This document shows, piece by piece, positions 21,949-25,497 of a stretch of 64,000 bases of DNA (its first letter is position 1; each line of letters opens with the position of its first letter). This stretch comes from Hemiscyllium ocellatum (Eukaryota), in NCBI RefSeq assembly GCF_020745735.1, contig NC_083417.1:59582001-59646000 (forward strand), in the 5' to 3' direction. A model generated the notes under the pieces. It saw only the letters and a list, made by a program, of their open reading frames with translations. It did not search any database and was not told the origin of the DNA. Made by a program: the position numbers and the translations under genes.

Positions 21949-22115
21949 GGTGGGAGTAACTATGACCCTTTTAGACACGTCTCCTTTGGGAATCTTGCCT
22001 GGCTAGTTACCGCTCAGTAGTTTTTACACAATTTTGTCTGCAGTAGCAAATGGCATTCCTCCTCGAGGTTCCTGCTGGAAAGAGCACTCCTCTCGGCTAT
22101 TGGATGGCTAAATAT
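21949..22115 (+). ncRNA. Degenerate HDV-like self-cleaving ribozyme of R2 with 28S-derived 5' leader
   Basis: GTGGGA (21950-21955) can pair with TCCTGC (22070-22075, two G-U); GTAACTA (21956-21962) is the exact complement of TAGTTAC (22004-22010); core CCTCCTCGAGG (22058-22068); candidate J4/2 GGCTA at 22095 or 22106. Confidence 0.7.
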
Positions 22116-23266
22116 GACCTAGAAAAATTGCGAGATGGCTGTTTGGTCTGCATGGATCATAACTCTTATCCTCCAAGTATCACACACAAAAAAAGACTAT
22201 ACAAGATGGAGACAGTTAAAGACTCTCATCAGTCCCGTAGGGATATGCCTCGGAAGAAAATAACCTCCCGGCAGGCTTAGTGGTAGTGACCTATAGAAAG
22301 TGCAGATACCACATTAGAAGAGAATCCATCTCCACCCAAACACAGGAGATGGCAGAGAGACCCAGTGTATGCATCCCCATTAACTGTGTGAGTCAAGGTC
22401 GGGTCAGGCCAATAGGACCTAGAATGGCCATAGAAGACACAAAGCCTGTGGTAGAAGAGAATGTGAGGGCAGCCCACCCTATGGATCAGGTTATTGCAAC
22501 TCAAACCTTCTACACAGAAGATACAACAAAAGGGCTAACAAGATATATGAGCTATTGGACACTGATACATCGGAAATGACGACTTATATCGATCCAGTCA
22601 TAATTGAGCCCTCATTTGACAAAACAAGGAGGTCATGATCCACTGTCCTACAGGGGTCTGTTTTGTGTAATCAGTAACTCCCTCCTTCCAACCATAGGGG
22701 CGTTTAGACAACATTTAGTCAAGATACATCAGGTCAAGAACATTCTTAAAATGCAAGAGCAAAGAATATCACGCTATAGAATGTCACTACATGAAATGTA
22801 ATGGCACTGGCCCTTCTAAACTATCAGGAGCCTTCACATGCTCAGGATGCAAGTTAACATTCACATGCAACACTGGCCTTGGCCAATACAAATGCAATAA
22901 GCATGCAGAATATCACAAGGAGGAGTACTTAGAGAGTGCCTCAAGACAACAGCCAAACCAGGAAACGGACGGAAGAAGAGGCAAACCTTGTCCATTAGTT
23001 GGAACAGCAGTGTGCAGGTTGCACCTTTATCAACAAAAAGATAGCCAGTATCCTAACTACAACACACCTCAACAGATCTCGGACAAGTGTAGGACACTGC
23101 AAAATAGCAATGTGGGACCCCAAGCCACAGTGACCAAACTTCCAGAGACCACCCTGACAGAAGACTCTGAAGACAAATCCTCAGGTGTCCAACAGCAAAA
23201 AAAAGAGGTCAGACTGCCCACTTGCACTCCTAAACACCAAGATTTGGACGACTAAATTACACAGGC
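21949..23266 (+). mobile_element. Decayed 5' part of an R2 non-LTR retrotransposon (three zinc fingers + Myb), outside rDNA
   Basis: Starts with 28S target-leader sequence and HDV-like ribozyme core. Frameshifted translation gives LFCVISNSLLPTIGAFRQHLVKIH (ZF), KCKSKEYHAIECHYMKC (CCHC ZF), FTCSGCKLTFTCNTGLGQYKCNKH (ZF) and RTEEEANLVH*LEQQCAGCTFINKKIASILTT-TPQQISDKCR (Myb, 22966-23093), the N-terminal architecture of vertebrate R2. Confidence 0.85.
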
Positions 23267-25280
23267 AAAGACAGAAGTGGGAAGTTGTGTATGGACGCTG
23301 TGGAGATCGGAGAGGTGCTAAACAAATATTTTTCATCTGTTTTCAACTCAGGAAAAGGAGAATATTGTAAAGGAGAAGAATGAAATACAGGATATTAGAC
23401 TAGAAAGGATCGAGGTTAGTAAGGAAGAGGAGTTATCAATTCTAGGAGTGAAAGTAGACAAGTCCCCTGGGCCAGATGGGATTTGTCCGAGGATTCTCTG
23501 GGAAGCTAGGGAGGAGATGTTGGAGCCTTTGGCCTTGATCTTTGAGTCATCGTTGTCTACAGGTTGAGTACCAGAGGACTGGAGGATTGTAAATGTTGTG
23601 CCCTTGTTCAAGAAAGGTAGTAGAGATGACCCAGATAATTATAGATCAGTGATCCTTATGTCTGCTGTAGGAAATATTTTGGAAAATATTATAAGAGACA
23701 GGATTTATAATCACCTAGTAAGTAAAAATTTGATTGCAGATAGTCAACATGTTTCGTCAAGGGCTGGTCATGTCTCACAAATCTCATTGAGTGTTTTGAG
23801 AAGGTGACCAAGCACGTGGATGAGGGTAGGGCAGTTGACGTGGTATATATGGACTTCAATAAGCCTTTGATAAGGTTCCACATGATAGGCTGTTGGAGAA
23901 AATGGAGAGTCATGGGATTGAGGGTGAGTTAGCAGTTTGGATAAGAAACTGGCTTTCTGTAAGAAGGCAGCAAGTGGTGGTCAATGGAAAATATTCAGCC
24001 TGGAGTCCGGTTACTAGTGGTGAGCCACAAGAATCTGATTATGTTAGATTAGATTCCCTACAGTGTGGAAACAGGCCCTTCGGCCCAACAAGTCCATACC
24101 GACTCTCCAAAGAATAACCCACACAGACCCATTTCCCTCTGACTAGTGCACCAAACCCTGTGGGCAATTTAGCATGGCCAATTCACCTGATTTGCACATC
24201 TTTGGACTGTGGGAGGAAACCAGAGCACCCAGATAGAAACCCACACAGACACGGGGAGAATGTGCAAACTCCACACAGACAGTTGCCTGAGGCTGGAATG
24301 AAACCTGGATCTGTTTAAGGACCACTGGTATTTGTCATTTTTATGAATGACTTGGACGCAAGCATAGGTGGATGGGTTGGTAAATTTGCAGATGACACTA
24401 AAGTCAATGGAGTGGTGGACAGTATGGAAGAATGTTGCAGGGGGACTTGAATAAACTGCAGAATTGGGCTGAGAGATGGCAAATGAAGTTCAATTCAGAT
24501 AAATAAATGCGAGGTGATTCACTTTGGTAAGAATAACAGGAAGGCAGAATACTGGGTCAGTGGAAAGATTCTTGGTAGTGTGGATGTGCAGAGGGATCTT
24601 GGAGTCCATGTACATAGATCCCTGAAAGTTGCCACCCAGGTTGGTAGTGCTGTTAAGAAGGCATACAGTGTGTTAGGTTTTATTGGGAGAGGGACTGAGT
24701 TCCAGAGCCGCAATGTCATGCTGCAACTATGCAAAATGCTAGTGCGGTCACACTTGGAATGCTGTGTACAGTTCCAGTCGCCCCATTACAGGAAGGATGT
24801 GGAAGCATTGGAAAAGATGCAGAGGAGATTTACCAGGATGTTGTTTGGTCTGGAGGGAAGGTCTTATGAGGAAAGGCAGAGAGACTTGGGTCTGTTCTCA
24901 TTGGAGAAAAGAAAGCTAAGAAGGGATTTGATAGAGACATACAAGATGATCAGAGGATTAGATAGAGTAGATAGTGAAAGTCTTTTTCCTAGGATGATGA
25001 TGTCAGCTTGTACAAGGGGGCATAGCTACAAATTGATGGGTGATAGATTAAAGACAGATGTCAGAGGCAGGTTCTTTACGTAGAGAGTGGTAAGGGCGTG
25101 GAATGCCCTACCTGCTAATGTAGTTAACTCAGCCACATTGGGAACATTCAAACAATCCTTGGATAAACACATGGATGATGATGGGATAGTGTAGGGGGAT
25201 GGGCTTAGATTAGTTCATAGGTCGGTGCAACATTGAAGGCTGAAGGGCCTGTTCTGCGCTCTATTGTTCTATATTCTATG
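23267..25280 (+). mobile_element. CR1-clade LINE (second subfamily), 5'-truncated, abutting the R2 relic
   Basis: PLFKKGSRDDPDNYRSV, KFADDTK, QRDLGVHVHRSLKVA motifs; tail TGTTCTATATTCTATG; SINE inserted at ~24044-24311. Confidence 0.92.
24044..24311 (-). mobile_element. HE1-type SINE nested in CR1
   Basis: Splits the CR1 GEPQESV|LGPL motif. Confidence 0.88.
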
Positions 25281-25497
25281 AAATGCACATCAAATTATGT
25301 TTCTGGCCATGGCAAACTAACTGGGGCAGCCCGTTGGCTCTGCATTTCCCATTGCATGGTGGCTGTTTTAGAAGATCATTGCTGGTGCATTGGCCTGGGA
25401 TGTCCCTAGTCCCTTCACCCTTAGACACACTGGCTACATGGAATTTCTAAAACATCAACAAGTGACATTAAAACTTGATTACGGCAAGTGTTCAAAA

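Follow-up and report, generated by a model that had tools for sequence, protein, structure and literature searches.

A stretch of 64,000 nucleotides of the genome of the shark Hemiscyllium ocellatum (NCBI RefSeq assembly GCF_020745735.1, contig NC_083417.1, positions 59,582,001 to 59,646,000 of the forward strand), here called the window, carries at positions 21949-25497 the remains of an R2 element. This block is most likely a single, long-dead R2 copy at an ectopic position, i.e. ordinary transposon wreckage and not a new mobile element. The R2 is of the three-zinc-finger (A) lineage, and it was inserted by its own target-primed reverse transcription into an older long interspersed nuclear element (LINE), at a site outside the ribosomal DNA (rDNA). 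Before insertion, the RNA had been transcribed together with 28S and released by its own ribozyme, which cut at position -28. Since both ends of the block are native ends of an R2 RNA, the insertion was made by the R2 machinery, recognising its 3' untranslated region (UTR). The middle of the element is missing and a copy of the LINE CR1 stands in its place; we consider it fairly probable that this interior was lost after insertion, through a CR1 hit and a deletion.

Structure of the block and its insertion site

The R2-derived block is a single unit inside an old L2/CR1-like LINE, and it is these flanks that place it outside the 28S rDNA site of R2. The translation of the host LINE runs as ...MQQDLDSIQAWTENWQVTLKPY to 21948 and is taken up again as ICKAVNITRKQESNQLPL... 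from 25498. Joining 21948 to 25498 gives ...WQVTLKPY-ICKAVNITRKQESN..., which restores the host frame exactly, with no duplication and no loss of sequence. The features recognised in the block and its flanks are listed below. Two R2 copies served as main references: L001, which resides in rDNA on a metagenome contig and encodes the protein P0001, and L002, from the bamboo shark Chiloscyllium punctatum.

21818..21948, + strand: left part of the host LINE, C-terminal region of an old L2/CR1-like reverse transcriptase (RT), recognised by translation, with the frame picked up again at 25498
21949..21976, + strand: 28S rRNA leader, R2 target -28 to -1, GGTGGGAGTAACTATGACCCTTTTAG.., with 3-5 changes from 28S when compared with the 28S upstream of the L001 R2
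21949..22119, + strand: decayed R2 ribozyme of the hepatitis delta virus (HDV) type, 64% identity to L001 66-272 in an alignment with the conserved core
22250..23266, + strand: N-terminal remnant of the R2 open reading frame (ORF), about amino acids 24-394 of P0001, from tblastn, PDB and HMMER matches
22664-22729, + strand: zinc finger ZF3, cysteines lost
22752-22799, + strand: zinc finger ZF2, cysteines lost
22839-22904, + strand: zinc finger ZF1, C..C...TGLGQY..H, with H changed to Y
~22960-23095, + strand: Myb domain, frameshifted
23267..25280, + strand: 5'-truncated CR1 LINE, from the RT region to the canonical tail ...TTCTATATTCTATG, from tblastx to a CR1 copy at 55770, tblastn of LINE proteins and the junction sequence
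24044..24312, + strand: short interspersed nuclear element (SINE) lying within the CR1 and diverging by ~17% from the consensus of the window's SINE copies
25281..25446, + strand: stretch between the CR1 tail and the R2 3' terminus, holding a block at ~25402-25437
25447..25497, + strand: R2 3' UTR terminus, ...AAACATCAACAAGTGACATTAAAACTTG..CAAGTGTTCAAAA, from an end-to-end alignment with L002 13565-13623
25498..26256, + strand: right part of the host LINE, recognised by translation

A first-pass annotation of the window had given the same limits for the block, and these proved exact, as excision between them restores the host frame. It had also described three zinc fingers and a Myb domain in R2 order, which the tblastn, PDB and HMMER matches support, and a CR1 starting at ~23267, in agreement with CR1 homology that begins at 23267 where R2 stops at 23266. 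Its proposal of an R2 5' ribozyme is consistent with the 28S leader and with the homology to the L001 ribozyme. As it had also stated, the R2 RT and restriction-like endonuclease are missing: a search of the whole window found neither of them, the queries being four R2 proteins (P0008-P0010 and P0013), all of which include the RT and two of which are full length with the endonuclease.

The insertion site has a weak likeness to the 28S target, in the top 2% of window positions. A separate 3' fragment of a CR1 at 20800-21817, with its tail ending at 21817, directly adjoins the left part of the host LINE, a stub of 131 bp, and the R2 site thus lies within a pile of nested LINE insertions. The host flank at 21920-21948 (GGCAAGTAACATTGAAAC) resembles CAAGTGACATTAAAAC in the R2 3' UTR (25457-25474), with 14/16 over CAAGT.ACATT.AAAC, and more weakly also the 28S leader (AGTAAC..TGA). 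These likenesses are probably due to chance, and microhomology of this kind could also have aided the off-target event. Within the 64-kb window no second copy of the R2-like parts of the block was found. A run search with the R2 part gave two samples of H. ocellatum, as well as ~20-26% of the 31-mers in two related species, a signal that is most simply attributed to the orthologous locus, i.e. the FBXL8-HSF4 interval.

Ends of the inserted RNA

The 28S reference for the 5' end was taken from L001, where 28S ...GGCGGGAGTAACTATGACTCTCTTAAGG is followed at once by R2. The leader of the block matches this 28S sequence beside the L001 R2, and the window copy thus starts at -28 of the R2 target. R2 ribozymes cleave themselves most often at this position (PMC3774820), and the P1 stem of these ribozymes is built with 28S sequence (PMC3774820; PMC11331408).

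In the alignment with L001 the conserved ribozyme core of the block reads ..CCTCCTCG..CC.GCTGG.. followed by G.CTAAA. P1 is formed by 21949-55 and 22070-76 and is closed at its 5' end by a G·U pair, just as the genomic ribozyme of HDV has G·U as its first pair. P2 (22052-56 with 22114-18) contains one mismatch, P3 (22057-59 with 22067-69) has its first pair broken and carries the loop L3 UCCUCGA, and P1.1 pairs C22061-62 with G22077-78; the putative catalytic cytosine of J4/2 is C22108. One pair of P2 that is G-C in L001 is A-U in the window copy, with both sides changed. The defects amount to one broken pair in P2 and one in P3, as expected for a dead copy. By sequence homology, the 5' end of the block thus appears to be an HDV-like ribozyme with a 28S-based P1, giving an RNA 5' end at -28. 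An Rfam search of the block gave no match to an HDV-like ribozyme family, which is unsurprising because of the 96-nt insert in J1/2.

At the other end, the last 51 nt of the block (25447-25497) show 36 identities when aligned with the terminal 59 nt of the L002 3' UTR, a score that was reached by 2 of 20,000 shuffles (p ~1e-4) and by none of 21,248 other 51-mers of the window. Many mismatches fall on CpG sites in the L002 reference. The 3' UTR of L002, which ends ...GAGTGTTCCAAAA, matches the published 3' UTR of R2-1_STig, and the latter adjoins 28S in rDNA and ends ...GAGTGTTCCTAAA (PMC13188248). It is thus an R2 3' UTR terminus that stands at the 3' junction with the host LINE.

The preceding stretch, 25281-25446, probably represents the end of the R2 ORF, divergent R2 3' UTR, or both. 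It contains at ~25402-25437 (AGTCCCTTCACC..AGACA..ACTGGC) a second, colinear block that resembles the beginning of R2-1 3' UTRs from sharks, with a 12-nt identity to the start of the R2-1_STig 3' UTR and the words CCTTCACC/AGACA/ACTGGC in common with L002 13366-13389; taken alone, this likeness is non-significant. Searches with 25281-25401 gave no match to R2 C-termini, 28S, Pfam or Rfam (including its R2 3' family), and folding of 25281-25497 gave no structure signal (z = 0.35). None of the k-mers taken from the R2 5' part or from the 3' piece occur in the first 500 characters per cell of the R2 table of PMC13188248; with cells of this length and no close relative in the table, this negative is uninformative. 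The first-pass annotation had noted ~215 bp between the CR1 tail and the host LINE, which correspond to 25281-25497 with the host resuming at 25498, and had raised the possibility that this piece is R2 3' UTR. The last 51 nt bear this out by matching the terminus, and 25281-25401 is the part for which a match was not found.

Other assignments for this region were tried and given up. Comparisons did not support reading 25281-25446 as coding sequence for the R2 C-terminus, or as the ORF running on directly past codon 394. When 25437-25497 was taken as a decayed 28S trailer, its similarity to downstream 28S sequence (67 metagenome rDNA loci) did not rise above that of shuffles. A second, split copy of the host LINE (23205-23285 plus 25459-25485), as might result from a long target duplication or a double template jump, was rejected because 23205-23270 is R2 coding sequence (TPKHQDLDD*ITQA, similar to TPKHREIDDNLTQAE of P0001) and 25459-25485 is R2 3' UTR.

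The coding remnant

Homology to shark and fish R2 proteins extends from 22250 to 23270/23282 (tblastn E ~1e-24 to 1e-27). The remnant comprises, in this order, an N-terminal extension, ZF3, ZF2, ZF1, Myb and a linker that ends in TPKHQDLDD*ITQA, and it contains at least three stops and several frameshifts. Stops and frameshifts also affect the zinc finger and Myb remnants themselves (~22636-23095), which keep the R2 order, so that the DNA-binding module ZF3-ZF2-ZF1-Myb of the R2 A lineage is present, though decayed. A 178-aa piece (22719-23252) matches R2 in the PDB entries 9nl3, 9dou (R2Tg) and 9nl2 with E values of 9e-7 to 2e-5, and the other PDB matches listed for this piece are non-significant (E ~2). 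A HMMER search of all libraries gave seven proteins, five of them R2 N-termini (P0001, P0002, P0005, P0006 and P0007), with P0002 and P0007 being bamboo-shark R2 fragments; a word search with a 154-aa ORF gave no match. The sole RT inside the block is that of CR1.

Three-zinc-finger R2 elements of the A lineage have been described in sharks, namely R2-1_STig and R2-1_CCar (PMC13188248). The block shares with these, and with the bird element R2Tg (PDB 9dou), the 28S leader starting at -28, the HDV-like ribozyme, the order ZF3-ZF2-ZF1-Myb, the GLGQH-type finger and a 3' UTR terminus of the type ...GTGTTC(C)AAAA. It differs from them in that it lies outside 28S rDNA, has no RT and endonuclease, has a broken ORF and is interrupted by CR1.

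The CR1 copy and the loss of the R2 interior

Colinear homology to R2 extends to 23266 and is lost precisely where the CR1 begins. At the 23266/23267 junction the R2 reference runs on as ...TQAEELL, whereas the window switches to CR1 (KDRSGKLCMDAVEIGEVLNKYF...), with an overlap of at most 1-2 nt. The CR1 has the same orientation as R2, and its canonical tail ends at 25280, 217 bp inside the 3' end of the block. No target-site duplication was seen flanking it. Since the SINE nested in it is ~17% diverged, the CR1 is old. A crude count of frame disruptions gave ~8 per kb in R2 vs ~4 per kb in CR1, which hints that the CR1 is younger than R2; the nested old SINE implies that it is not much younger.

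The following course of events is proposed. The original copy would have been longer, probably full length at ~4.7 kb. A CR1 would later have inserted at ~217 bp from the R2 3' end, and ~3.2 kb of R2 interior, covering the RNA-binding, RT and endonuclease regions, would then have been lost. This loss may have occurred as a target deletion by the CR1 insertion itself, or as a later deletion reaching from about R2 codon 395 into the 5' part of the CR1. A SINE would then have landed in the CR1, and the whole block would have decayed. Judging from the pairing defects in the ribozyme core and from the broken ORF, the relic is now presumably without function.

Several observations fit this proposal. 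The sequence that follows the CR1 does not continue the R2 frame, so the discontinuity in R2 coincides with both boundaries of the CR1, as is predicted by a CR1-associated or later deletion. The lack of a target-site duplication at the CR1 fits insertion with deletion. Furthermore, CR1 and SINE insertions are dense in the window, and a later CR1 hit is thus to be expected. Target deletions associated with LINE insertion have been described for human L1. The block shares with such events a LINE that is truncated at its 5' end and keeps its tail intact, the lack of a target-site duplication, and target DNA missing between the junctions. To our knowledge, this type of deletion has not been shown for shark CR1, and the deletion in the window may equally be a later, unrelated event.

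Other points weigh against a loss after insertion. The ~17% divergence of the SINE is about that of the leader (3-5 changes per 28 nt), so the CR1 arrived early, or possibly together with R2. The shared orientation of CR1 and R2 is required by co-insertion, whereas a later hit would give it half of the time. No placement on R2 was found for 25281-25446, which would give the right breakpoint in R2 coordinates, and the count of a single copy covers the 64-kb window.

Alternative histories of the block

It is unlikely, and still the best of the alternatives, that the block was inserted as a pre-formed non-autonomous unit, either an internally deleted R2 or an R2(5')-CR1-R2(3') composite that arose from an rDNA copy. 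The transcript of such a unit, made together with 28S, would have been released by the ribozyme, and R2 protein bound to the retained 3' UTR would have carried out the insertion in trans. The first-pass annotation had likewise put forward a deleted R2 of ~1.5 kb mobilised in trans, a reading for which no support was obtained. There is precedent in Drosophila, where short internally deleted elements (SIDEs) of R2 and R2/R1 hybrid SIDEs occur (Eickbush and Eickbush 2012, PMC3414825). Like the R2 SIDEs, the block has the R2 ribozyme end and the R2 3' end and no enzyme-coding middle, and like the hybrids it contains sequence of a second LINE (PMC3414825). Exactly the parts that a SIDE needs have been kept, i.e. 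the ribozyme with the native -28 end and the 3' UTR terminus. Moreover, the 217-nt 3' piece is close in length to a complete R2-1 3' UTR of sharks (216 nt in R2-1_STig), and the age of the CR1 would also suit an early composite. However, the two ends are not joined directly but have 2 kb of CR1 between them, and the deletion may postdate the insertion. In the case of a plain SIDE, the deletion junction itself must have been the point at which the CR1 inserted, a coincidence of roughly 1 in 1500, and a composite requires a CR1 insertion into an R2 copy in rDNA, which is rare.

The comparison with Drosophila also brings out differences. Drosophila SIDEs are multi-copy, short and located in rDNA target sites (PMC3414825), whereas of the block one copy is known, which lies outside rDNA and retains 1 kb of ORF. 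This retained zinc finger/Myb coding sequence would not be needed by a SIDE, the known SIDEs lie in the 28S site, and the window holds no second copy. The R2/R1 hybrids end in the 3' end of the other element, whereas the CR1 is internal here and the 3' end is that of R2 (PMC3414825): the unit ends at 25497 in the R2 terminus. That the R2(5')-CR1-R2(3') arrangement is a mobile, non-autonomous composite, formed in an rDNA R2, processed by the ribozyme and spread in trans by R2 protein to non-rDNA sites in sharks, is in our opinion quite improbable; if true, it would be a vertebrate counterpart of the Drosophila SIDEs with a foreign LINE fragment.

Highly improbable is a chimera formed by template jumping in one event. 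The RT would have begun by copying the R2 3' end, moved onto a CR1 RNA at its 3' end and finally returned to an R2 RNA, which it copied to the 5' end. The R2 RT does switch templates both in vitro and in vivo, e.g. onto U12 snRNA (small nuclear RNA) and tRNA. The CR1 has the appropriate orientation and a complete 3' tail at the junction, both junctions are sharp with an overlap of 1-2 nt at most, and both R2 RNA ends are native. Yet two jumps and three broken RNAs would be needed, the documented jumps take place at the template 5' end and not internally, and the CR1 frame looks less decayed than the R2 frame. The intact CR1 tail is equally well explained by an ordinary CR1 insertion. A composite or a double template jump fits the anatomy of the block but needs rarer events.

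The first-pass annotation had further suggested that CR1 machinery freed R2 from rDNA, by switching from a CR1 RNA to an R2 RNA and so carrying the R2 5' part away. The R2 5' part does directly adjoin a 5'-truncated CR1 in the same orientation, but an insertion primed by CR1 would begin with the CR1 tail, and 217 nt that end in the R2 3' UTR terminus separate this tail from the host LINE; the suggestion is refuted by this R2 terminus, and such a chimera is extremely improbable.

R2 copies outside rDNA in cartilaginous fish

The block is a clean fossil of a ribozyme-processed R2 RNA, with its 28S leader from -28 and its native 3' end, and shows that R2's own machinery occasionally inserted such RNAs off target in sharks. 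The locus is another instance of the dead ectopic R2 that is already known. An element of a new, non-autonomous or chimeric kind would be of greater consequence, but the evidence that was tested gives no support for one.

The bamboo-shark copy L002 (BEZZ01001755.1, 9765-13623, on a 281-kb contig) is also an ectopic, dead R2. It has a 28S leader from -28 (GACGGGAGTAACTATGACTCTCGTAAGG), a ribozyme with L3 partly deleted, a native 3' terminus and an internal deletion of ~540 bp in the N-terminal region of the RT. Its downstream flank contains TGCCTC, shifted by ~1 nt relative to where this word stands in the 28S target. Like L002, the block stems from a -28-led R2 RNA with a native 3' end that was inserted off target and then decayed; it differs in that ~3.2 kb was lost vs ~540 bp in L002, and in that the gap is filled by CR1.

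In the catshark Scyliorhinus torazame, two 'hypothetical proteins' of 921 and 748 aa (P0008, scyTo_0010770, and P0009, scyTo_0005536) are R2 proteins. They are encoded on contigs of 255 kb and 487 kb, and their genes probably lie outside rDNA. Taken together with L002 and these catshark genes, the block suggests that off-target R2 events recur in cartilaginous fish. Recurring off-target insertion bears on how strict R2 targeting is, which is a question for gene-insertion tools based on R2.

The reference copy L001 (JGI metagenome 3300026616, Ga0262470_10648) is a 2.6-kb contig with a vertebrate-type three-zinc-finger R2 in the 28S site. Its ribozyme is apparently intact and its ORF is 57-59% identical to catshark R2; the contig is host DNA, from a fish or shark, in a metagenome.

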